Source of the DNA: Oikopleura dioica
Taxonomy: Eukaryota; Animalia; Chordata
Reading direction: 5' to 3'
Assembly: GCA_907165135.1 (NCBI GenBank)
Contig: OU015567.1
Span: 7,936,001 to 8,000,000 of the forward strand
DNA length: 64,000 nucleotides
A model generated the notes under the pieces. It ran no database searches. It had not been told where the DNA came from and saw only the letters and a program-made list of their open reading frames with translations. The first letter of the stretch is position 1; each line of letters starts with the position of its first letter. The translations under genes were made by a program, and so were the position numbers. This document shows, one piece after another, positions 1 through 55,312 of the stretch.

Positions 1-2
1 AC

Positions 3-467
3 AGTTGGTTTCTTCTTTCTACGAGCCTTTTTGAACTTCCGTTTTGACCGAGACTTTTCAAAGTCTTGGCTGTCCTCGGAATCATAGAAGTCCCTTTGCT
101 CTTGCTGCTGATACCGTCTCTGATTACGGGCGATTGTGTACTGACCATTCTCTTCATCGGACTCTTCTTCCTCCTCGCTAGATTTTTCTTCCTCATCTGA
201 GCTTGAAAACGCTCTTCTCTTTCGAGATTTTTTTGATGATCCTCTAGGAAGGGTTCTGTTGCATAATCCTGCAACCATTTTGGCTGTTTCGTCTTCCTCC
301 GTGTCATAGTCAGGGTAATTTTCCTCTTTTGTCTTAGGAGCTCGGACTCTAACGCGATTAGTTATTGGATTAATTTCCCAGTAAGAGCATATATTTTCCA
401 TCTGGGATAAGGAGAAAAAACATCCTCCATTAAGGGGGGCTTTACTTCCAGTATTTAACGTACTCAT
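3..467 (-). CDS. Hypothetical acidic/basic low-complexity protein, runs off the left edge (partial)
   Basis: ATG at 467 opens a stop-free frame to the window edge: MSTLNTGSKAPLNGGCFFSLSQMENICSYWEINP...SSSDEEEKSSEEEEESDEEN...KRKFKKARRKKKPT. Missing from the ORF track because no stop falls in the window. Confidence 0.55.
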   Translation of the reverse strand, partial: MSTLNTGSKAPLNGGCFFSLSQMENICSYWEINPITNRVRVRAPKTKEENYPDYDTEEDETAKMVAGLCNRTLPRGSSKKSRKRRAFSSSDEEEKSSEEEEESDEENGQYTIARNQRRYQQQEQRDFYDSEDSQDFEKSRSKRKFKKARRKKKPT

Positions 468-855
468 GAGAACTTAATATATTAGAATTGCTCAAACTCA
501 ATCTTGTAAAAATAGAATAAAAACAAAAATAAAAGAAATAAATTACCTGCGACATTACCTTTTTAAGTCTGAAAAAACTTTTTTCCGAGAGGTGTGATTT
601 CTCCAAAAGAGAAATGAATTATGAGAAACGCACTCAAGGTCAACATTTATAAACACGATGGAACAGCGCCACCTGACACATCATCTAAAACAACAGTATA
701 AATAAACGTGTCCGATCATTCTTGCTCAAAGTACGAAATGTTGAACCTTGAGAAAATAGAAAAAAATTGTTATCAACAATCGTCAGCATCAATAAAATAT
801 CTGGCAAAGAAATCATAGGAAGCAACGAATTCAAAGCTACCGGGAACAAATCACT

Positions 856-1585
856 ATGTCGACCATTATCACAAAGTTCTTACCAGATATACGATTTCAA
901 CATCCGTGCTCTCTATTTATAAGTGGAGCAACTGGGAGTGGCAAAAGTAACTTTGTAAAAAATTTAATAGAATGCGAAGGTATACGCGGAGAAATGACAG
1001 ATATATATTACTTCATGCCACGTCTCGAGACAATAAATATTCGACCACCTGCACACCAAGAATTATTTTTAATGGAAGGTCTGCCAACAAAAGAATGGGT
1101 AGATGACACGTTCAAAACTGAAGATAATAACAACGTGATTGTTGTAGACGATCAGTGGTCCCAAGCAGTAAATAGCCCGGTTATCGAGTACCTTCTCACA
1201 TATGGTCGTAGACATCTCCGGCTGACTCTAATCTTTATAAGTCAGAATTTCTACGAAAAATCGAAAATTTCCATCACCCTAAGGTAAATGATGACTTAAT
1301 TTTATATTTATTTTCTGAATTTTTAGGAATTGTATGACAATATTTATTCTATTTAAAAATAATACAGATACAGGCATAAATAAAACAGTCGCCACAAAGA
1401 CAGGCGAAGTGGAAGCGTACAACGCAGCTATGCGCCTTTTTAAAGAACGAAGAATCCCAACCTTCTACTACGTTATCCTGGTAAGAGACATAAATCACCC
1501 GGATCAACCACGTGTTATGACAAACTATTTCGGGGAGATCCCTGGACTTGGCGGCGCACCCTGGCTATTCGACGTTCAACAGTAG
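856..1585 (+). CDS. A32/FtsK-HerA family DNA packaging ATPase (Polinton/Maverick type), 2 exons, 228 aa
   Basis: Walker A GATGSGKS, Walker B VIVVDD, then RRHLRLTLIFISQN. A 43-nt GT-AG intron (1284-1326) joins ORFs 856 and 1334 in frame to give ITLR-NCMTIFILFKN, matching the family motif TISLN.xY/IVLFKNPRD. Confidence 0.85.
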
Positions 1586-1707
1586 TTACCTGCATTACAC
1601 ATTTCAAATAAATAAAAGAGTAAAAATTAAATGAAAGCAGTTTATTTTGATCTTTGGTGAGTAATCAGTTTCTAGAACGTTTGTTTTCTTTTTTTGTCGT
1701 GAATAGA

Positions 1708-2891
1708 TCAAGAAGAATTGTCTTCGCCAATGGCGGTGGATGAAGTAGCAGCCTGCTCGTTTTCTTCTTTCCTAAAACCATAAGATAAGAATTCGAGATC
1801 GAGAATAAGAATAAATGAGATATCGCAAAATTTGATAAATTACGACTAGATCCTAGCGGTGTGTAAAATATGTAACTTTCGTAACTTACTTCTCACTTTC
1901 CAAAATGATTTTCTGCTCCTCTTGATATCTTCTCACAAGATTGAAGATGGCATAATCGAAGTCTTCTGGTTGATGCAGTTGCGGACGAAGCGCATGGCGA
2001 GAGAATCCCAAAAACCGCTAAAAAATTATTAAACAAAAAACAAGCGACAGATTACATTTTGATCATCGTTGATTATTTCACGTTCCAAGCAGATAGTTTC
2101 AATACGATGCGCAAAACGAACAAACGAGCTTATCGGTCCAAAGTAGTTCGAGAACGCGTAGGTACGAAAGAATTTTCGTGCAAGTTGTCTGAGAATCAGC
2201 AATCGAGTGTCGCACATCTGGACCAAGTCGTAGTCTTCCTTTTTTAGTCCAGCGATTCTTACCAAAGATACAACGCGCCTGTTTATTTTGTCCGTGTCAG
2301 CTTGATTGTCTTTCTGATACTCCGGATTTCGCTCGAGCAGACTTCTAGCAAAGACTTCCCCGTAAAAGAGGTACACAGAAGTCATCGTAAAAGCATCATC
2401 GCGAAGCAATGTGAAATTAAAAAAGATGTCATCCAGATAAGGATAGACGACCTTTTGGTAATCACATGTAAAACTATAGGACTTGTCAGCAGTCTTCACA
2501 CGCAAATAGGTAAAGCGGCGATAAATAACCATCGGTTCATATGACAGAGTCCCGTATGAACATCCATCAACAGCGTGATGAGAAACAGAAGGTCGTCGGC
2601 GGACTATAATATATAAATAACTTTGTTTTGAACTTTGGTATTACCGTATTCTTCGCACAGGTTAATAACAATTCGAGGATGGAAGGTGTTAGTTTCCCTG
2701 TCGTACTCCTGGAATAAATGGAATCCAAAACTCATCTTTCGTTTAGCAAAAGCCTCCTTGTTCAGAATTTCAGGAACCGGGAAATTGGAATCATTTTCGT
2801 CCCAGCCATCAAAAATGTTCGCTCTAGGTAAAACAACAGGGAACTTCACTTTACACAATTCAGAAAGAGTTTCTTCGAAGATCAACACCAT
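1708..2891 (-). CDS. Orphan protein, 4 exons, about 328 aa (viral-element gene)
   Basis: GT-AG introns 2644-2604 (41 nt), 2055-2018 (38 nt) and 1889-1772 (118 nt) join ORFs 2604..2891 and 2029..2532 plus two further exons in frame. Ends ...TAIGEDNSS*. Confidence 0.6.
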
Positions 2892-3076
2892 CTCGAAAAA
2901 CTCTGACGACTAACCACCGAAAGCTACAAACCAAGACTACCAAAAACTCCAACCGACTCTTGACCGCCTCACACAACAACTTCAAACCGAAAAGGAAATA
3001 ATAACAAATCAGGGATACAGGAAATATTTTTTTTATTTTGTTGCAGCTAAAAAGCGCAAAGAAAGTTGCTTCTGCT

Positions 3077-3945
3077 TTAGTTGCTTTCGGTAGACCAATT
3101 TCGCCCAGCAAGCGTGAAGGAGCGATTCGACGGAGTGGTGAATTCTAGTCGCCATCTCTGATTGCAAATATCGCTCCAAAGATCGTGGTATCGCGCATCG
3201 ATCTCCCGCTCTTTCACCTGTAAGTAGCCCTTGAGCTGGAGCTGCTCCTCTCTCGTCAATTTTTGTTTGAGGAGATTGTAGATAGCAGCGGGAGAGGGAT
3301 CGTTCGCTTGGGTAGAGGGGTCGATTGGGTACGACCCAGCGAAATCGACGACTTAAAATAATAAGAAACCAGATAGAAAACTAAAACTTACATTCGCGAG
3401 CGGGAGAACGGGGCTCCTGTTGGTCGGGGACAGCCGTTTCCTCACCAGAGTTGGGACGAGGAGGAAGATCTGGATACACCTGCGGGGCTGGGAGGCCACT
3501 TGGTCCAGCTTCTTCAGGAAGACGGAGCTGAGGGTCGGAGTTTCGAGATGGACCCCTAACGCGGAAGTGATTAGGAGGGCAATCGGTGTCCATTGGAGCA
3601 GAAGCTATCGGGGACAAAGGTGTCGGCTGCGGCTCCGGCTGCTGAACAGGGGAGCTGGGAGCGAGATCGTTAGTCGCTTCCGGGGCAGCGTCTCCTGATC
3701 GACGATTCTTGGAAGAAAAGCCGAATTTGGTGATCAGTTTTTTCTTGCCGCGTGGGAGTTCTTCGCTTTCAGATGCGGACGAATTGGATGCATCAACAGA
3801 ATGCAGAGCCAGTTTCGCCTGGAGTAAGTGCGCTTCCGCGCGAGAGATCGCAGAAGCGAGAGCGGATCGTTTGCTGGCGGATCGGGTGATTCGCTAACAT
3901 CAATTATTAATTTGAAAAAAATCTAATACGGGTACTTACAGTCAT
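3077..3945 (-). CDS. Orphan protein with Pro/Ser-rich N-terminal half, at least 3 exons (viral-element gene)
   Basis: ATG ACT at 3945, intron 3939-3894 (46 nt), exon RITRSASKRSARASAISRAEAHLL...ARE, intron 3391-3352 (40 nt), exon FVDFAGSYPIDP...LKQKLTREEQLQLKGYLQ. The 3' end is uncertain. Confidence 0.5.
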
Positions 3946-4464
3946 CGGGAAAGTCGAAAAAAAGTCGAAACGTCCTTCTTCTAAAGCTTGCAGAGAGCAA
4001 CTGATTACTTTTTGCAATTTCGGCCTGATAACGACAACAATTCTAGAGAAAAATCGTGTTTTTGACTTGGAATTTCTTTGTTTTGATCTTTGCAAAACAT
4101 GTTCTAGAGACGAAATAAAGCATAAAAAACACCATTTTAACCATTTTTACGCTTTCTTTTCGCAATAAAATTGAATCTACTGGATAAAAAATTTTCCTTT
4201 TTTGGGAGTAGGTCGAGACCTAGATAAACAAACTTCAAACGCAATTCAAATAAATTCCGACGGTGGAAAAATCTTTTACGGATGTTTATGTACCCGAGAA
4301 GGGGTATTTACTAACGAAACCATCAGGAAAAAACAACTAAATCTGCTGAGTAGAGTTCCACGTAGCAACTGATTGTTGTGATAACTTTGAAAAAGGAAAT
4401 GATCTTGACCGATTAAATCAAAAGAAACAAATCAGAAGGACACAGAATTCTTTTTTTGATTGCA

Positions 4465-5187
4465 ATGGAAGTACAAAGTCAGAGAAAAGAACAAGATGTC
4501 AAGCAAGAAAACGAAGTGGTACAACACCCCCGGGATAAAATCAAAGCTTCAAGAAAAACTTACAAAGTAATGTATGAGAAACTCCTTGATCAGCTGCTTA
4601 GGACACAACCAGGAAGATTCCACTCACACTGCAACGGTCTACTTTGGGCTATCGGTAACAATGAAGACGGAGCTCCAAAGTACAGTGCAAATCGGCTCAA
4701 GTCAATCATGGAAAAATCACCAGACGTGGATTACGACCATAATCTCCGAAAAGAAATTGAAGCTGGTGCTGAACGGAACAATAGTGAAGATTTTGTTATT
4801 GACCACACTCTCTTTGATTATTATGCTAGGTATGAGGACAGCGACTTCAACGTGCTCTACATCAGACGAACCGCCAAGGGAGGCGAACAACCATTTCCCG
4901 ATTATGACAAACGCGACAATTCCGACGACTCAGACGACAATTTCTTCGAATCAGATGACGACATCAGTGAAGACAGTGACAGGACCGTATCTGTGCGAAT
5001 CGGAGAGCCAGATGAAAGTGAATCAAGCTGCAGCTGTATCAACTTATTACTCGAGGGGAATGACACCAACAGTGAGTACTCAGACGAGAGCACAGACGAC
5101 GACAGCAGGGATGGGTCATATGATGAGAGACTTGCAAAGGAAGAGACAGATGCGGATGCAACGGCTAAAGCGACTAAAGGTGCTTGA
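4465..5187 (+). CDS. Orphan protein with acidic C-terminal half (viral-element gene)
   Basis: ORF 4456..5187 with first ATG at 4465. Globular-looking N-terminal part followed by D/E/S-rich tail. Divergent from the gene starting at 3945. Confidence 0.5.
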   Translation: MEVQSQRKEQDVKQENEVVQHPRDKIKASRKTYKVMYEKLLDQLLRTQPGRFHSHCNGLLWAIGNNEDGAPKYSANRLKSIMEKSPDVDYDHNLRKEIEAGAERNNSEDFVIDHTLFDYYARYEDSDFNVLYIRRTAKGGEQPFPDYDKRDNSDDSDDNFFESDDDISEDSDRTVSVRIGEPDESESSCSCINLLLEGNDTNSEYSDESTDDDSRDGSYDERLAKEETDADATAKATKGA

Positions 5188-5936
5188 ACGACGATTTAAA
5201 ACAACACAATTGATACGACATATTATTGCAAACAGAAAAGTGCGTAACCTGCGACCCTTTACATATACTGAACTAAAGTACGTTTTTTCCCAGTGTATCG
5301 AGGAATAAATGTGCATTGAAATTGATTTGTTTGGTTGTCTATTATTATTGCTTGATTATATTGGCAGAATAATTACAGTATTGATTACGTAACAGTAGTT
5401 GCAGTTGTCATCATTGTCTGCAGTAGATGTTCGGATCTGAAAGTTATGTGAGGATATGTTTTGTAGTTTGGAATGGTTACCTTGTTTGAACTCTGATGTT
5501 TGCTCTTCTGGTCTTCCTTGTCAAGGTCACTGCTGTTCCAAGTGGGGGATAACGTCTTCACTGTCGTTGTGTCCATTGTTATGATTATGTCGAGTGTTTA
5601 CTCATCTGAAGGTCATTGTTATGATTAGTGAGACCATTGTTATTGTATGTGAGGAAATGAGCGCTAGAATGAAGCCGGAAGTTGATTGGTGTAGGTTGTT
5701 TACCTTTGATTGGCTCTAGAATAATACCGGAAATGACACGCCGCCCTAATCACTGAGGGAAAGTTGTTTGTTTAGACTGGAGCAGTTGTTTACCTTTTGG
5801 TGGAGAAACAGGAAGTGACCTCGATGTACACCGCCGCCCTAATGGTTCAGGATTGGTCCAATTTCGAACTTCGCGCACACCCGTTTTAGCCATTCACAGA
5901 GAACCACAACCCCTCGACAGACAGCCACTCTATATA

Positions 5937-6153
5937 CCGCGATTGGCATTTCTGACTGACTGATTCTGATTTTCGAGGGAAATAGCTAATCAACCAATTA
6001 AAATTTGACTCTAGTGTCTCTTCTTTTAGAGTTCCGTCAAACCAGTGACGCCTACGCAATCTACGTTACAAATCTCCTATGTTTTTTGCATGGAGAATTG
6101 TAACGTCAATGTGCATCTTTCAAAAATCAGTCAGTCAGGACTGCCAATCGCGG
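5937..6153. repeat. 217-bp fold-back unit with ~33-bp imperfect inverted ends (TA-flanked MITE or terminal hairpin of the viral element)
   Basis: CCGCGATTGGCATTTCTGACTGACTGATT at 5937 pairs with AATCAGTCAGTCAGGACTGCCAATCGCGG ending at 6153. TA flanks both sides. An internal inverted pair ACGTTACAAATCTCC / GGAGAATTGTAACGT lies at about 6064-6105. Confidence 0.7.
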
Positions 6154-6226
6154 TACTACTCCTCTGAGCGAGCTGCTATCGAGATGAAGGCTGGAGATAA
6201 GCGGATAAGGAGCTCTTGTCGGTAGA

Positions 6227-8667
6227 ATGAGCGCTGGTGGGGGAGAAAGGCGGATGGATCTTGGAGATTATGGAGGAGGAACAGTTTAAATACTTGATTG
6301 AACTCTTTATTGATTTTGTTATTGTGAAATGTGTTATTGAACTGACATGATCAGGACTGCTGACGGGAGGATCGTCAGGATCCGTAGCTGGCAGCTCGGC
6401 GCCCCCAATTTTTAACCGAGGGAAAAAGACATTCCGCGCTGACCAATTCTCCGATGACATCAGAGAAGGCTTCAGAAAGCTCAGGGAAAATGACTCCCTC
6501 AGTGACTGCATTCTCATTGCTCAGGAATTGAGGTCAACTCGAAGATAATCCTTTCTCTTGTTACTGAATTATGTTTGTTGACCTGAGAAATGAAAGGACG
6601 TGCAATTTCCCGTGCACAAGGCTCTTCTTGCTTCTGTTTCTGATTACTTTCGTGCCATGTTCTGCTCAGGGATGAAGGAAGCGACCTCGAACGTCGTCTC
6701 ATTGCAAGGAATTTGTCCAGAAGGGCTCAAGAAGATCATCGATTTCATCTACAGCGGGGAGGTGATGATTGGAATGGACGATGTCTGCGTCATCTTAGAC
6801 GCCGCTACTCACATGCAAATCAGTCACGTGGTCGCCTTTTGTACAGAGTTCCTTGTCGAGCAACTAACGATGAACAATTGCCTCGAAATCGGCAACATTG
6901 CCTCGCAGTTCAACTTGTCCGAAGTCGACGACTTCATCAATCGTTTTCTTCTTCAAAACTTTACATCTATCCCCGACTTGTGCAAGATCCCGTTCGAAAG
7001 GTTAAAGTTCCTCCTGGGTTCGAACGATCTCCAGGGAGTCAAGGAGCTCGACCTGTTTCACTACGCCAGGGTTTGGCTGAAAGGAGGTCTGCCGCAAGAA
7101 AATCGACTCTCCCGCGCAGGAGAACTCATGGAACAGATCAAATTCCCGCTCATCCAGCCTTCCAGCGACCTAAACGAGATCAAGGGTATGAAACCAATGA
7201 CCAGAAAATTTTCTAATAAAAATGTAGATGTCGATTTTATGAAAGAGTCAAAATGTATGCAGCTTTTGCTTGAAGCCACAATTTACCAAATGCTCCCAAA
7301 CATGCAGCCACTTCTTCAAACTTCACGAACCCAAATTCGCTCAAACTCGAATCACCTAATCGTCCTTGGCGGAGTGCTTCGTCAACAACTCTCTGTTTCC
7401 AATCAATTAAGGGCGTACGATGAAAACAAAAAGGTACAGTTGCGCTTATAAGTTACTATTGAGTCTTTTCTTCGAGAAAAATTAAAATATTTTTGTAGGA
7501 TTGGCTTCGATTGCGCGAAATGGATCATCCACGGTACCAACATGGAATCGCCGTGATTGGAAATTTCCTATTTGTCGTCGGCGGCCAGAGCAACTACGAT
7601 ACGAAGGGAAAGACTGCTGTTGATACTGTCTTCCGCTTCGATCCGCGGACGAATTCCTGGCGCGAAGTTGCAAGCCTCAACGAAAAACGGACATTTTTCC
7701 ACCTGTCCGCAATTGGGAGCAATTTATACGCAGTTGGTGGTAGAAACTCCGCTGGAGAACTGGCAACAGTCGAAAAGTACTCGCCGAAGGAAGACGAGGT
7801 AATTTAATCGAAAAATGAGGTATTTAAATCCCTTTTTTTCAGTGGAACTTCGTCTGTAAAATGAAAGAACCTCACTATGGCCACGCTGGAACAGTCTACG
7901 ATGGAAAAATGTACATTTCCGGTGGAATCACTCACGATTCTTTCCAAAAAGAGCTGCTTTGCTACGATCCGACAGTTGATGATTGGGAGACTAAAAATCC
8001 GATGACAGGTCCTAATCAGCTCATTTTTCTATAAATTTTCAACCCTTTTTCAGTCGTTCGGGGGCTTCATTGCATGACAACGCATCGTGACCGTCTGTAC
8101 GTTTTCGGCGGCAACCATTTTCGTGGCAGCTCTGGTAGGAGCTTTAATTTCGTTCTGGGAATCTAAGAATCCTGCTTATAGATTACGACGATGTCCTGGA
8201 GTGCGAGTATTATCTACCGCGAACGGACCAGTGGGTGAAAGTTGCGCCAATGCTGACTGGTCAATCAGATGTCGGAATCGCTGTTTATAATGATCGAATT
8301 TATGTCACTGGAGGCTACAGGTACGTTTTTGGAAGAAATAAAAGACAATATTTTTCAAATAGTTGGAATAATCGTTGCATGGTCGATATTGTTCAATGCT
8401 ACGATCCAGCAAAAGACAAGTGGGAGAACCGATTCGAGCTGCCAGAAGCTCTTGGTGGAATTCGAGCTTGTACTTTGGTGTTGAAGCATCCGTCGGACTA
8501 TACTGTCGTCAACGTCGAAAAAGAGATTTCAATGCTCGAGATCGGCAGTAATCATGGGTAAGAAAATGGAAAATCCTAGCTTTCAAAACTATTTTTTCAG
8601 CGCTCGATATGGCCTCCCGCCTGGAATGCCCAATAATGCGTCACTAGATTCTGCCCCGCCGCTTTAA
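6227..8667 (+). CDS. KLHL9/13: Kelch-like protein 9/13 orthologue (BTB-BACK-Kelch), multi-exon
   Basis: [22 protein letters not shown]. Diagnostic stretches [81 protein letters not shown]. The first exon is tentative. Confidence 0.93.
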
Positions 8668-11715: not shown

Positions 11716-14700
11716 ATGGGAATGCTAGAAGCATTCAACCTCGCTCAGACAAAAGCACTGAATCTTTTGAATCCGTTGAAGTTCTTCCAGGGCGTCGGCA
11801 AGCCATCTTCGAACATGAATAAGTTCCTTCCAAAGAATCGTAAGAGCTGGGCAGAGTGTTACAAAAACGAAGAGATGATGCATGTTTACACGACTTCGAA
11901 AGCGGGCTTTCCAACGATGACCTGGATGCGCAGCTCGAAATACTCGATACATTACATTTTCTCAATTGCAGGCTTTGCCGCGTTTTTGAATTGGAAAGTC
12001 ATGTCCATGCAGCTTCAAAAGTGAGCAAAACTCAAGAAAATCATCAAGCTATTTTGATTTCAGAAACGAAGACTACAGAATGGAGCAAGGCGAACTGCAA
12101 GTGCCTCAGTACGCCACGAATCTCGGCTTTGGAATCCGCTTTCTTTACCTTGTAATTGGCATGGCTGCTCTTTCCGCGTTGCTTTTGCTTCCCTCGAGAA
12201 GAGTTCACAATATGTACATTCATATTCCAGACAAATCTCTCATCATAGAAAGCGGAAGGTTATTCGGTACAAAGCCGACGTACTATATTTTTGACGGAAA
12301 AGTAAGATGCCAATTTTCTTCTCATCTCATTAATTTATTGTAGGAAAACGAACGTGTCCGATATATTCTTCAAAAATCAAGGCAAAAAAGTGACAACATG
12401 AAAGGTCTGAGCACGGACAAAATCTCCAGTGGGACGCTTTCGTATCATCCGAAACTCGCTTATTGGGGTCAGACGCCCAGATTCTTTCCTAAATTCTTAT
12501 TCCTGGGCAAAGGAGAGTTTCTCCTGAATATGAACGAAATTAAGAGCATTCAGAAAAATATGCCTTTTGCTGGAGGTAAAAGTAGGGTGGGAATATTTTT
12601 TCCGAATGTTGGTCCCGAGGCTAGATATTTTTTGGGGTGAATTCTAGGGTCCTAAGAAGTCCCGAAAAAAAATTTGAGAAAAAATTTTTTTGTCGGAAAA
12701 AATTCTAGAGCCGATTGAAATTTAGTTTTTTTTAATCATGAAATATGGTTTTTTTTTCAAAAGGAAATGCCCTAGGGCAATTATTTTGTCCTTCTTTTTT
12801 CTTTTATTTTTTAGCCGCGCTTAAGCCGCAAAAAAGCCGCACCTCAAAGATGAAAATAATAGAAAAAATTATAGCTTTAACGCCAAAAATAAGTATTTTT
12901 TTTTCGTTTTTCATTTTTTTTTTGACTCAAAAACTAAGTGACCCCCTTAATAAACATAGTGATACCCTTATTTTTACAAAAAGATTCCCTAATTTGTATA
13001 TTTATATTTAAAAATCGTCAAAAATTAAAAATTCCTTTTTCAAAGGAAATTCGAAACACCATAAAGGTGTTCCTCGCCAAGAAATATGGGCATTGAGGGA
13101 ATCTTGAGGACCTGCGCGGGCCTTGGCCACACTGGCCATGTGCGCTGGGGCCTTGCGTAACTCGCGATGCGCAGAGGAGGATGCCTCCCGCGCCGCGATC
13201 CCAATGACTAACGAGGGATCGCGACGCAAAGAGCCTGAGACGGGCATGGTGGGGACATGGGGGGAAGCTCTGAGGGGCCTTGAAAAAAATTATTTTTGAC
13301 AAAAAAAATAATTTTGGCCTCTCTAGATCAGCCCGGACCATTGACAATGGTCAAAGCCGCATACGTGCGTACGTCCGTACATCTTCATCGCACGTATTAT
13401 CGGTTTCGACGCGCATCGTGAGTTGACAGGAAAGTCTGCTGGTGGGCCTAACTCGCCAGCAGGGATCCCTGTCCTAGGCGCTTTTGGCCCGGTATCAGTG
13501 GGACGGCCGACTGATATCGTGACCAGGGCAGGGCAGGGCAATGCAGGGCAGGGCAGGGCGGGGAAAGGCAAGGCAGGGAAGTGAAGGGCAGGGAAGTGAA
13601 GGGCAGGGCAGGGCGGGGAAGGGCAAGGCAGGGCAGAAAAGGGCACGGCAGGGCGGGGAAGGGCAAGGCAGGGCAGAGAAGGGCAAGGCAGGGAAGGGCA
13701 AGGCAGGAAAGGGCAAGGCAGGGAAGGGCAAGGCAGGGACGGGCAAAGCTGGGAAGGGCAAGGCATGGAAGGGCAAGTCAGGGAAGAGCAGGGCAAGGTA
13801 GGGCAGGGAAGGGCAAGGCAGCGCGAGGCATTGTAAGGCTCATCAATGCAGCGAATGGCATCGCACGGCTAGGCAACGCTGTGAGTAGCAGCGAAAGGCT
13901 GGGCAACGCAGTGAGAGGCAGTGCAGGGCTTGGCGTTGCAGTGAGAAGCCGCGCAAGCCTAGGCAACGCAGTGAAGGGCAGCGCAAGACTGGGCAACGCA
14001 GTGAGAGGCAATTCTGGGCTTGGCAACGCAGTGAGAGGCAGTGCTGGGCTTCGCATTGCAGTGAACCAGCGCAAGCCTTGGCAACATAGGGAGGGGCAGC
14101 GCAAGGCTGGCCTTAGCAAGACAAAGTCGCGCGATCAAGCTATCCTTTCCGAATGAAAATAAAGGCAACTTTCTACAAGCAACAAACAAGAACAATAATC
14201 TCGAAAGACAAGGCATATGAGCGATCTATGATTTATTCAGAGAAAAGCACAGAATGGTAAGCAAGAAAGATACTTTTCTTGTGCTGCTTGCGCTTCTTGT
14301 TTGCCTCTTTGACTTTGTTCGCCGCAGTCTCCTTCTGCTCATCGGTCATTTTAAGTCGAATCGCAGAGGTAAATGAATCGTAAGCTTCATCGCGTGTGAC
14401 CACTCCGAAATCGGCAACAACTGCGTTCGCCTTCGTGAATGCCTGGAAAGCAGCATCGAACTAATGAGGGAGGTTAGTTTCATGAAACCAAAAAGTCCTC
14501 TTTTACCTTCGAAGCATCCTTTGGTAGTGCATCAAGTGCAACCGCAAGTTCCGTAAGCCCTTGGAGACGAGCCTTAAGACTTGCCTCTTTGTCGATGGTC
14601 TCCATCATTTCGCTCACCGCAGCAGCGTGGGCAGACTTCCTAACATCGGAGCCCCGCTTTTCATCTGCATAGAGTCCTCGGAAGCAGCGACGTAGAGTCT

Positions 14701-17700
14701 CCTCATCGTCCATGAAGTGGCTCAGAGTTGAATTAATTCGGCAGCAGAAGACGGAGGCGAGCTTTGTTGAGTTGAACTTCGAGACAAAGGTGTCCTTGGC
14801 AATGCTGAAGCAGCGTTCAGCATGAACATTTGTCAATGCAACAAGGCCCTAGAAAAATGTATAAGGTACTGCTGACTCTGTGCAAGAGAGAGATGAAAAG
14901 TATCGCTTACCTCAATATCTTCCTTCGGAAGCTGCTCGAAACGGCTGAAAGTGGCAAGGAGAGGGTCGAGCTTTCGTCGAATTCGCTCATTCAAATCAGC
15001 AGCCCCACTTTCATCGTCAAGAATCGAGTTGAGAAGCTGAGAAAAGCCGGGAATCCCATTATCTCCGTTGCGCGTCATCGGATTGCCCTCAGAAGTTAGA
15101 AACAGTGCTGGGCATGCAGCGTCTCGTACAAGCTCGACAGTCTCTTGAAACGTTTTGATGAGCTTCTTGTATTCATCGAGCGTCGCTTCCTTCGCCGTTT
15201 CCGTCCAAAAGAAGAGGCAGAGATGATTCCAAAGGAGGTGCACACTCACAAGCTCAGGAATGTAGACTGGCTTGGCATTCTTCACGATTTCGGCCTCTTT
15301 TTCCTTGCCTTCGAGAGCCAAAAACTCAACGATCAAATCGTAAGTAACGCATCCGACAGCGGCATTACGGTAGAAAACACCAAATCGGATGTTCTGCTCC
15401 AGTTGAAACGGCGTGATTGGGATGTCGAGGCCTCTTTTAATTTTAACTCCTTCAAGAAACAACTGAAATTTGTTTCCCAGGCTACCTTGGTATCCATGTG
15501 TGCGGCTGGTGGTAAGAAGACCCTTCATCAAGACATAGCAGCGGGATGCTTCGTCGACAAGAGATGCCTCCAACGTGCGTTCAAGGTGCATGGCAGAATG
15601 CATCGAGCAAGTAAGATGCTCTCGCTTGAGACTATACTTCGTCGACAAAAACGCATCCACCTTCTTTGCAATCGATTTTGCCACAGCGGCGTTATCGTTG
15701 ATCAGAAATTTGCAATTCTTCGCAAATGTCGTCTGAAGATCGGCCGGAAGAGAGTCGAAGAGCTTGGTGAAGGCGTTCATCACAATGTCGACATTCTCCG
15801 TTGCCACCGGAAGCATCGCCATGCAGAAGTTCTGCTCACCTGGGACGAGAACAGTCACAACTTCATACTTCTGCATGGCCAGCTTGGACCCGTCAAAGCC
15901 AAGTCCAAACGGCTTGTCAAGACGAATGACTTCAAGGAGGTGTTCGCTATGGAGTCGTTCAGTGGCGCCAATCCAAATGCGAGCCGTTCGATCGGTGACG
16001 GAAGGAAAGCCGTACATTTCTGCGATAGCGATCATCGAGCGGCTCGAGACGTTCAATTCGACACAGCCTCGTACAAGTCGTGCTTTCGCGATCACATCAT
16101 CTTCGACACGTTCGTAGTTGCGTCCACCTACTGCAGGAAGATATTCTGAGCTTGTTGATGCTTGAGATGGGGCTGCTTGTGACGAAGGTGCTTGAGACGC
16201 GGGCGTTTCAGACGTCGAAAGTTGAGACATGGAGGTGGTGACTGCTTCGGTTGTATTCTGCCGGCGATGTCTGAGCGCTTCGACAAGCTTTTCGTAATCT
16301 TCCTTGCCAAAAGCATCAAATGATCGAATGAAATTGATCGCCTCCTGCTGATAATCGGTCGCCATTTCAACATCGATGATTGAAGACGCAGGCTCTCTAA
16401 AGAAATCATGAGTATTATGGAGGGACGCAAAGAGAAAAAATCTGAGAAAGGACCACTTACAGTTCAAGACGAGGTTTTTTCTCTTCCGGAATATCCTCTG
16501 CATAGACGATGAGACAAAAACCAGTGTACTCAGACGAGTTCTTCAGGAACTTGGTGACGAGAGCGACGTTGCGCTTGTGTTCCTTCGACTTCTTGGATGG
16601 AGGCAGCGGCCAACCACCGTTTTCCATGCGCGATTGTCCGTAGCGAGTCAAAAAGGTCTTGACATAGCCCTGGAGCGTTGCTTCAACAACATTCTTGCAC
16701 GCGGCTAACCCTTTCTTGAGCTGTCGAGAAAGGGCTTCTGCGTCGAGTTCTTGATCTACCTGATCTTTCGTCTTCCCAAGCACCTTGAAAATTTCATCAG
16801 ACGTAATTGGCTCTCCTGGAAAATAACAGGCGGAGAGATCGTTCGTGGTGGGCTTGCACAAAACCATTTTTCGTCGTTTTCGTCTTTCTCTTAGGTGATC
16901 TCTGGTAAAAATGATAAAAACTTCAAAAACATCGACTTATATAGGTTCAAACACCTACGCAATGTTCACTTTAGCCAATGAAAACACTCCAAATTTTCAA
17001 TCCTGACCAATCAGAACTCTTGAGGTAGACCAAACCATTCTAAACCGAACCATTCTTAAAATCGAACCAGTTACTATTTTCGACCACGTTGAGAAAGAGG
17101 GCGGTAATGAGCACAATGAGTCTGCAGTGGGGGAGACAACCTCAAATTGCCTCCGGCTAGATGGTCATCAATAAGCGGATGGCTCATCATTGAAAGCTTA
17201 TCCCTGACGGCTTATCCGTGAATGCTCACTCATTATGGCTTATCCCTTGATTGCTCATCGCGACGGGTAGACCAAACCATTAAGAACCGAACCATTCTTC
17301 AAATCGAACCAGTGACTATTTTTGACCACGCTGAGAAAGAGGGCGGTAATGAGCACAATGAGTCTGCAGTGAGGGAGACAACCCTATCTTGCCTAGAAGC
17401 ACCGTTTTCAGAGTGTGTTCAAGCTTATGTCATGCGAGCGCCGCGAACAGTATGAGTGGATGCTTGTTTGTTACCAGAGCAGCCTGGAAATAGACTGCGC
17501 TCTTTTCAGAAAGAACTGAAGAATCTTTTCCGAATAAGTGGTGACAAATGAAAGAGTGCGCTATTTCGAAACCTTTTCTTGAGAAATGCTTTTGGAAGCA
17601 ATTCATGGCGCTCGCCAAGGGCTATCAAGCCTTTCCTCTCGATTTTCTTGATTTCTTATGTGTTTAAAGCAGTAAATTAAGGTAAACAAGTGGTTGAAAT

Positions 17701-18545
17701 GGGTTTGTGCAGTCCAAGAATGTTTCCTTCTGATTTTGGCGAAATTTCACTTTTCAATTTTTATTCATCGATTTTTTTGAGTGGGTTCCGACAAATATTT
17801 TTTGGTCAATATAGGCTCAAAAAATGCGCAAGACGTTCTTCTTTATTGTATTGGTACTAACTCACTCCGGGACCACCCTTTTCTTAACAATTTTTTTCAA
17901 AAACCGATCGGATTTTATTGGAAAAATGGCATTGTCCATCTTCAGCGCCTCATATCTCTGAAATGAGTCATGATGACGTCATCATTCCAGTATTGAAAAT
18001 GAAGCTTAGACACTGTTCTTTGTTTAATTACTAATAATGATGACGTCATCATGACTCATCACAGAGATATGACTCATTTTTCCGATGACATGCCAAAAAA
18101 TCATGTTTTTTGCCATAAATCACGTCTCAGATGAAAATTTTCGACGAAACTTCGGGAATGTAATTTTTAGGACCTAACAAATCTACCAAGACCATTCGGA
18201 CCTATTTTCACCGAAAGTGGAAAAAATATTCCCACCCTAGGTAAAAGTCTAAATCGCTCGTTCTCCTTGTTAAAATTAATCTTAGACATTATAAAAGGCC
18301 TTTTGGAATATCATTCTCAAGACTCCTTCACTCTCAGCAGACGGGAAGCCATGACAAGTGGAGAAGAAGTCAGCAGAAATAAAATTCTAGCTCCTCTTTT
18401 GTATTTCTTTTCGATGTCAATTCTGTTATATTCTAACCAAGATGTGTTTCTTCAAAACGAGTCTATTTCATATCCAGATAATGCTATTGGCACGGCTGGT
18501 TATAAGAAATTAGTCAGTAATCTTGGTACTGTGACGGATGAATAA
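11716..18545 (+). CDS. Two-TM membrane protein, possibly TMEM70/186/223 family; interrupted by the hAT element, last exon(s) beyond 18240
   Basis: Exons at 11716, 12062 and 12343 splice in frame. Two hydrophobic segments followed by SRRVHNMYIHIPDKSLIIESGRLFG. Removing the hAT plus one TSD joins ...MPFAG to the frame of ORF 18267..18545. Confidence 0.45.
13524..14110. repeat. G-rich minisatellite inside the hAT: (GGGCA)n-like 5/10-mers, then about 8 degenerate 30-mers
   Basis: agggcagggc / aagggcaaggca arrays 13524-13820. 30-nt units ctNggcaacgcagtgagaggcagtgcNggg at about 13865-14110. Confidence 0.95.
14233..16867 (-). CDS. hAT transposase, 4 exons, about 820 aa
   Basis: Introns 16460-16397 (64 nt), 14910-14849 (62 nt) and 14506-14461 (46 nt) are GT-AG and frame-preserving. 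Candidate DDE residues in FDGS, NDNA and AERCFS, plus the CxxH motif (CSMH). Confidence 0.9.
17024..17383. repeat. Two 118-bp direct repeats (17024-17141 and 17266-17383) upstream of the transposase
   Basis: Both copies read GGTAGACCAAACCATT...GAGAAAGAGGGCGGTAATGAGCACAATGAGTCTGCAGTG...GAGACAACC with few substitutions. Confidence 0.9.
17952..18070. repeat. 35-bp inverted repeat (subterminal hairpin) containing TGAGTCA and TGACGTCA motifs
   Basis: ATATCTCTGAAATGAGTCATGATGACGTCATCATT (17952-17986) pairs with 18036-18070, with 2 mismatches. Confidence 0.85.
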
Positions 18546-53486: not shown

Positions 53487-53893
53487 TTTTTTCGGAGCCG
53501 AATTAGATCTGAAAACCAAAGTTACATCAACTTTTCTCTTTGTCAAGTGCTCATCAAAAATAACAGAAATCGAAACAACAGTCGGAGGAAGAGAGAATCT
53601 CTCTCGGAGGAAGATTCTTTCCAGAGGCGAGAAAATTTTCGAGACTGACGCATCACGCGCGCAGATGCCCGCTCCGCCAATCAAATCGGGCGATTTCTCA
53701 GGCAAGGGCGATTGGACGCGCTTTCTGTAAAAATGACACATTTCAGAGATTTTAATTGAAATTTTCTTACTACGCGAGAGAATAAATGCTACAGAAGATT
53801 CTATTCGATTCATTTTTACTCCTTAAAATTTTTATGCCGAGAAAATAAGAACTTCGTCATTAAAAATTTCTTTGATTTTAGATTGAAACGGAC

Positions 53894-54988
53894 ATGGCTG
53901 CTGCAAGACCTGTAGTTTCTGTGTACGGTGCTGACGGATCCGCCACCGCCGAGCAGATCAACCTCCCAGCCGTCTTCAAGGTAGAAAATCATTGAAAAAT
54001 CCATTTTTAAATTCCTCCTCAGGCTCCAATTCGAACTGACGTTGTCCAGTTCGTCCACTCGAACATTGCCAAGAACGCTCGTCAGCCATACGCTGTCTCT
54101 GCCACCGCTGGCGAACAGACTTCCGCCGAGTCCTGGGGTACCGGTCGAGCCGTTGCTCGTATTCCCCGAGTCCGTGGTGGTGGTACTTCTCGATCTGGCG
54201 CCGCTGCCTTTGGAAACATGTGCCGAGGCGGTCGAATGTTCAACCCCAACAAGACCTGGCGCAACTGGCACAGACGAGTCAACGTCACCCAGCGACGATT
54301 TGCCACCGTCTCTGCCATCGCCGCCACTGGCATTCCCTCCCTCGCCATGGCCAAGGGCCACGTCGTCTCCCGCGTCCCTGAGTTCCCCCTTGTCATCGAC
54401 AGCGCCGCCGAGGCTTTGAAGAAGACTAAGGCCGCCGTCAGCGTACTCCGGGCCGTTGGCGCCATCGACGACGTCAACCGAGTCAAGGAAACCCGACGAT
54501 TCCGAGCCGGTCGAGGAAAGATGCGAAACCGACGACGCGTCCAGAAGCGAGGCCCTCTTGTTGTTTACCAGAACGACGATGGTATCGTCCAGGCTATGCG
54601 AAACATCCCCGGCGTCACCCTCCTCCCCGTCGATCAGCTCAACCTCCTTAAACTCGCCCCCGGTGGACATGTCGGTAGATTCACCATCTACACCGCCAAC
54701 GCTTTCAAAGCACTCGACACTGTCTACTCCTCCGCGAACAAGAAGGGCTTCTCGATGCCTCGACCGATCCTGGCGAACGCCGACCTTCAGCGAATCCTCC
54801 AAGCCGACGAAATCAAGGCCGCCCTCAAGCCTCGACGATCGGCGACGAAGCGAAGCACGGTGAAGAAGAACCCTCTCAAGAACATCAAGACGATGCTCAA
54901 GCTCAACCCTTACGCCGCCGTTCAGAAGCGAGCTGCCTTCAACAAGGCGGCTAAGAACGCTGCTGAAAAGGCCGCCAAGGCTAAGTAA
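53894..54988 (+). CDS. RPL4: 60S ribosomal protein uL4, 2 exons
   Basis: [11 protein letters not shown]...LPAVFK|[55 protein letters not shown]. Confidence 0.98.
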
Positions 54989-55312
54989 GAAAGAATCTTC
55001 CAGTCTTTCCTTGAGAAACTCTCTTTTCTGTTTTACGCACATTTACTTTCTTCATGCGCAATAAAAAAACGGAGTCTAAAAATCCGGATGATAAATCTCC
55101 TTATCGATTATTCTTCAGCTTGACTAAAGAATATCGTACAGTAACAACGCAGTTATTACCGTTTTCATTCAATGAAGGGCATAAGCAGGGCAGTGCAGGT
55201 ATTGTCTCAGAATAAATTCGAATTGACCAATAACTGTCAATAATTAAAATGGACAGGTTGTTGCACGATAGTCCTTTTATACTATCAGCCGCTTTGGTAA
55301 TGTTGCATCAGT

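Follow-up and report, generated by a model that had tools for sequence, protein, structure and literature searches.

A predicted A32-like packaging-ATPase gene with well-supported Maverick/Polinton-type ancestry in the larvacean Oikopleura dioica

The A32-like and FtsK-HerA motors of Mavericks/Polintons, adintoviruses, Polinton-like viruses, virophages, adenoviruses, and giant viruses pump linear double-stranded DNA (dsDNA) into a preformed icosahedral capsid. Larvacean genomes are extremely compact and transposon-poor. Here we describe a gene for a putative motor of this kind, termed G2, which lies near the left edge of a 64,000-nucleotide (nt) stretch of Oikopleura dioica DNA (contig OU015567.1, positions 7,936,001 to 8,000,000 of the forward strand; referred to as the window), together with its neighbors, namely, three orphan genes (G1, G3, and G4) and a gene with clear Oikopleura counterparts (G5). 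A class of transposable element labeled "MAV, maverick" has been annotated on the O. dioica Y chromosome, with no gene content given (PMC5240408). We found no paper that describes the genes of this class, and none in the searchable literature that links Oikopleura to a packaging ATPase or to a capsid protein.

Based on its sequence and modeled fold, G2 is firmly predicted to encode an A32-like genome-packaging ATPase of the FtsK-HerA superfamily. The gene is without breaks, and AATAAA signals are present 3' of it at 1607-1616. Its two exons were searched separately, with the Pfam scores and the structure model referring to exon 1. This exon matched Pox_A32 (PF04665; E = 1.3e-4; 22.0 bits versus a gathering cutoff of 22.8), Adeno_IVa2, and FtsK_SpoIIIE, as well as a large terminase in PHROGs, and exon 2 alone had no Pfam match. 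Pox_A32 was also matched by 15 of 20 and by 91 of 127 G2 relatives (E<=1e-3; best E, 8e-11), with Adeno_IVa2 being the second most frequent Pfam family among the 127, and PF04665 was precomputed on 18 of 27 close relatives. The Walker A motif (GxxGxGK[ST]) occupies residues 24-31, and Walker B, a hydrophobic strand with two acidic residues at its end, lies at D98-D99. Across the 127 sequences neither the P-loop lysine (K30) nor the Walker B aspartate D99 varies, and conservation is 90% or higher at G24, G29, and D98; G24, G27, G29, K30, D98, and D99 are common to 100% of 42 close open reading frames (ORFs). By homology to characterized motors, the G2 product would translocate DNA by hydrolyzing ATP with its Walker A lysine and Walker B aspartates.

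The fold pointed in the same direction. An AlphaFold 2 (AF2) model of exon 1, computed from the alignment of 127 sequences, had a predicted local distance difference test score (pLDDT) of 89.8, and its RecA-like alpha/beta core superposes on known packaging ATPases. Among predicted viral structures, the best named matches were the packaging ATPases of Tupanvirus and medusavirus (template modeling [TM] score, 0.66), along with adenovirus IVa2, an FtsK-like protein from an adintovirus associated with Drosophila, and the ATPase of mavirus. The best solved-structure match was the STIV2 B204 packaging NTPase (PDB 4kft/4kfr; Foldseek E = 2.4e-4; TM, 0.54-0.59). A search of PDB sequences with the G2 family profile returned P-loop-level matches alone, e.g., EccC and KaiC. 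This last result, and an exon-1 score that falls just below the Pox_A32 gathering cutoff, would suit an ordinary cellular P-loop NTPase that resembles A32 by chance. We consider such a nonviral identity highly improbable and already disfavored, given that Pox_A32 and then Adeno_IVa2 are the families matched across the relatives, that viral packaging ATPases lead the fold matches, and that the size and motif layout fit the A32-like clade.

Comparison with relatives also accounts for the second exon and for the intron. With the C-terminal half of P0008, an annotated O. dioica protein that joins its two halves at the same residue as the G2 splice junction, exon 2 shares 48% identity (E = 2e-25); with the corresponding segment of P0014, an uninterrupted relative of 228 amino acids, it shares 32%. 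33 of the 42 close ORFs stop in the alignment column where G2 exon 1 ends, and therefore G2 relatives appear to share the intron.

A HMMER scan of 1.8 billion representative proteins identified 535 G2 relatives at E<=1e-3. The close relatives, which come from ENA, JGI, and Logan assemblies, form more than 40 sequence clusters, with pairwise identities of 30-100% (median, 53%). Most are 50-67% identical to the G2 protein, and the best relative in the databases reaches 66-67%. P0008 is one identical protein annotated at both chr1.g1130 and YSR.g17171 (Y-specific region) of O. dioica OKI2018_I69 (Okinawa), in each case as an N-terminally shorter model of 175 amino acids. Such diversity, together with identical P0008 at two loci, is what a mobile or viral family would show rather than a single host gene. 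Longer relatives were examined by Pfam for fused viral domains, and A32 alone was found. A large, diverse, Oikopleura-resident family with a shared intron position thus points to G2 being a gene of a larvacean Maverick-type endogenous-virus lineage, and its Maverick/Polinton-type origin is well supported. In this respect a first-pass annotation of the window, which had recognized a Polinton-type packaging ATPase from the DNA letters, is borne out by the Pfam matches, the 535 relatives, and the folds, which place an A32/FtsK gene at 856-1585 (+).

The same annotation had named a single-copy ATPase among the conditions that would speak against a viral element. At the level of the family this is countered by its multicopy nature, with P0008 at two O. 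dioica loci, whereas for this particular copy nothing more than 67% identical was found, and self-comparison revealed no second copy of 1-6200 in the window. A rival reading is domestication, in which the host has retained a once-viral ATPase as a single-copy gene at a fixed locus; this would account for the intactness of G2, its host-style intron, and its host-like neighbors. G2 is indeed intact, with every catalytic motif present, its composition is host-like, and the lack of any sequence more than 67% identical, in a lineage that has been sampled (G5 has a 98% match), suggests that it is low-copy. Nevertheless, we regard domestication as quite unlikely; the family is very diverse and multicopy, its identical copies on chr1 and in the Y-specific region of the Okinawa genome follow a mobile or viral pattern, and Okinawa O. 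dioica, in which G5 has such a counterpart, yielded no G2 orthologue at 85% identity or more.

Gene models for G2 and its neighbors were read from ORFs, six-frame translations, and splice signals, and their coordinates are collected in Table 1.

Table 1. Positions, in window coordinates, of the packaging-ATPase gene and of the features around it
Feature	Positions	Strand	Details
G2, packaging-ATPase gene	856-1585	+	Intact, two exons, 228 codons
G2 exon 1	856-1283	+	143 codons
G2 intron	1284-1326	+	43 nt, GT-AG, phase 2
G2 exon 2	1327-1585	+	TAG stop included
G1, ORF running off left window edge	1-467	-	ATG at 467-465, 155 codons seen
G3, four-exon orphan model	1708-2891	-	~335 codons; exons 2891-2645, 2603-2056, 2017-1890, 1771-1708
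G4, three-exon orphan model	3077-3945	-	Exons 3945-3940, 3893-3392, 3351-3077; 5' end uncertain
G5, host (Oikopleura) gene	4465-5187	+	240-codon ORF, acidic tail
Noncoding stretch from G5 to BTB-BACK-Kelch host gene (ATG ~6227)	5188-6226	.	Upstream region of the BTB-Kelch gene

The tight packing in head-to-head and tail-to-tail pairs that the first-pass annotation had described was recovered in all five models. G1 (-) and G2 (+) are head-to-head with 388 nt between them, G2 (+) and G3 (-) are tail-to-tail with stop codons 122 nt apart and a G3 poly(A) signal at 1646-1641, and G4 (-) and G5 (+) are again head-to-head; G3 (-) and G4 (-) stand in tandem. All six introns in 1-6160 are GT-AG, five of 38-46 nt and one of 118 nt (41, 38, and 118 nt in G3; 46 and 40 nt in G4). 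These short introns agree with the O. dioica intron length distribution, which peaks at 47 bp (PMC5240408). Along with the 98% and 88% matches of G5 detailed below, they mark the genome as Oikopleura-like, so that the larvacean origin proposed earlier stands.

The orphan searches were thin, with the database search covering G3 exon b alone, and with G1 and G4 covered by Pfam and/or PDB sequence scans. The exons of G1, G3, G4, and G5 had no match in Pfam (E<=1) or PHROGs. By sequence, the exons of G3 and G4 matched nothing in the PDB except for a weak MEF2 MADS-like match of G3. This likeness to a MEF2 MADS box involves residues ~101-151 of exon b (2152-2304, -), with a phmmer E of 0.09 and no Pfam SRF-TF match. 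The database search with exon b, which covers proteins of up to 318 amino acids, returned no homologue of 100-318 amino acids. Structure prediction, which the first-pass annotation had recommended for the orphans, was uninformative for the same exon, as the single-sequence AF2 model had a pLDDT of 35 and was unusable. G1 has acidic/basic low-complexity sequence after ~60 residues, and G4 encodes a proline-rich protein, at 52-58% GC, that is probably disordered. G1 and G5 are alike in layout, each with a short ordered N-terminal part, a "...PDYD" stretch, and a long acidic, serine-rich tail. A paralogous relationship between these two was considered and rejected; the whole-protein z of 1.4 is nonsignificant, and a z of 4.6 came from a subregion picked post hoc and was discounted.

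The right-hand flank limits how far an element could extend. G5 is 98% identical to the ENA ORF P0210 and 88% identical, over its whole length, to XSR.g17024 (P0211) from the X-specific region of O. dioica OKI2018_I69, versus at most 67% for the best relative of G2. These matches mark G5 as a host gene of vertical inheritance, and an element, if there is one, can reach no farther right than ~4460. Judged by such matches, the window is O. dioica-like but is not of the Okinawa lineage. A 21-nt tandem repeat is located at 4914-4959, within the G5 acidic tail. In XSR.g17024 (409 amino acids), the G5-like first 242 residues are joined to a DHHC palmitoyltransferase domain (PF01529) that maps nowhere in the window, reflecting either a fused gene model or a gene order that differs between lineages.

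The noncoding stretch beyond G5 (5188-6226) is not a demonstrable element terminus. It contains a 31-nt inverted repeat (5935-5965 and 6125-6155; 94% complementarity between arms separated by 159 nt) that occurs nowhere else in the window. The repeat lies ~70 nt upstream of the BTB-BACK-Kelch ATG, among several ATTGG/CCAAT boxes, and may represent either a feature of the promoter or a small hairpin element. Because a host gene occupies 4465-5187 and the BTB-Kelch upstream region fills 5188-6226, any element would end between ~1.6 kb and ~4.46 kb, not at 6160.

Searches for other hallmarks of a Maverick/Polinton element gave negative results. No match to a protein-primed family-B DNA polymerase or to a retrovirus-like (rve) integrase came from the exons of 1-6160 or from the nine longest ORFs that were scanned to the right of 6160. 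An adenain-like cysteine protease had no Pfam match at E<=1 in any 1-6160 exon, and a double jelly-roll major capsid or penton protein had no Pfam or PHROG match in these exons, although a highly divergent capsid protein could escape such searches. No terminal inverted repeat (TIR) was found in 1-8000, where the sole inverted repeat is the local 31-nt pair, and 3950-4460 contained no repeat or terminus signal; the left end of an element would fall outside the window. Rfam and tandem-repeat scans identified nothing relevant. The proposed right arm of an integrated dsDNA virus at 1-6160 is thus not supported, with G5 being a host gene, 5188-6160 belonging to the BTB-Kelch upstream region, and no TIR or second hallmark detectable in the window.

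Neither composition nor G+C content at third codon positions (GC3) revealed a foreign signature in 1-6000. The trinucleotide composition of 1-6000 is ordinary (z, -0.2 to 0.1), and of 10 long ORFs scanned elsewhere in the window (nine of the 10 beyond 6160), five have no Pfam match. With ordinary composition, common Pfam-less ORFs, and a conserved Oikopleura gene in G5, the first-pass view that the region differs from the host genes beginning at 6227 was not confirmed. GC3 is somewhat low in G2 and G1, at 0.36-0.41 versus 0.51-0.59 in conserved host ORFs, and overall GC content is 38-42% in G2 versus 52-58% in G4.

Two other places in the window drew attention during these scans. The only trinucleotide-composition outlier is 12000-18000 (z, 2-3), which includes a 556-codon intronless ORF (14836-16503, -) without a Pfam match even at E<=5 and, at 13.5-14 kb, sequence that is rich in GC (0.64) and strongly skewed; the region may hold a further mobile element or a gene specific to the lineage. 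Long overlapping ORFs are present at 53819-55042 (-) and 54218-54988 (+), the former of which is glycine/serine/aspartate-rich and of low complexity and probably reflects the antisense strand of a genuine gene on the plus strand.

A shorter right arm can still be drawn, in which G1 to G4 (1 to ~4400) belong to an integrated Maverick/Polinton-like virus, the non-ATPase genes are too divergent to be recognized, and the right terminus falls within the 520 AT-rich nt that separate G4 from G5. G2 is wedged tightly between G1 and G3, leaving no room for a terminus, and G1, G3, and G4 had no relatives or domains in the searches made. The multicopy state of the ATPase family in O. dioica, and the GC3 of G1 and G2 below that of host ORFs, also agree with this arrangement. 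We view it as a tentative and somewhat unlikely reading. No hallmark beyond the ATPase was found, the low-confidence model of G3 is mainly helical and does not resemble a jelly roll, the GC content of G4 is far from that of G2, the remainder of the window contains orphan ORFs just as often, the G4-G5 interval carries no repeat or terminus signal, and G3 lacks an ORF-level relative in metagenomes that are rich in ATPase relatives.

We lean, with modest confidence, toward G2 as the sole demonstrably viral gene of the window, being either the outermost gene of an element with its body to the left of base 1 or an isolated remnant or captured gene among Oikopleura-specific genes. Several considerations weigh against this. 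The window begins 855 bases left of G2, so that any element body lies beyond it, and G1, G3, and G4 could be fast-evolving element genes. The 122 nt that separate the stop codons of G2 and G3 leave no room for a terminus, which implies that if G2 sits in a complete element, then G3 is inside it too. Additionally, the low GC3 shared by G2 and G1 is a mild hint that G1 travels with G2. It is also conceivable, though we think it unlikely, that a larvacean-specific Maverick/Polinton-like lineage exists that is highly diverse in the sea and has conserved spliceosomal introns, with G1, G3, and G4 as its unrecognizable structural or accessory proteins and the virus body just left of the window.

The searchable literature is nearly silent on larvacean DNA viruses, and the "maverick" class label was the only mention we found. 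An intact ATPase gene and more than 40 diverged lineages with one intron position indicate that a Maverick-type lineage has long been resident in larvaceans, and the G2 family offers a starting point for tracing the remainder of it. The neighborhood of G2 carries a lesson as well; in Oikopleura, tight gene packing and the absence of recognizable domains do not mark foreign DNA.

Compared with described systems, G2 most resembles the packaging ATPases of Mavericks/Polintons and adintoviruses (PF04665 and PF02456). The resemblance includes a length of ~228 amino acids, the Walker A and B motifs, a conserved H120/Q130 region, the Pfam matches across its family, and folds that include the adintovirus FtsK-like protein and adenovirus IVa2. 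As with Mavericks/Polintons, G2 resides in an animal genome and its family is multicopy; unlike them, it has no capsid, protease, polymerase, or integrase neighbor and no TIR visible in the window, and it differs from their ATPases by a spliceosomal intron at a fixed position, shared by its close family. The assignment is to the A32-like branch, and no finer among Polintons, adintoviruses, and Polinton-like viruses. The core fold of exon 1 is also like that of STIV2 B204 and the A32-like ATPases of giant viruses, whose identity to G2 is 13-16% and which belong to other virus groups in other hosts. Finally, the O. dioica "MAV" class occurs in the same host genus and, by its label, represents the same kind of element. 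It is reported on the Y chromosome, and one G2 relative is annotated in the Y-specific region, whereas G2 itself is near G5, whose Okinawa counterpart is X-specific.

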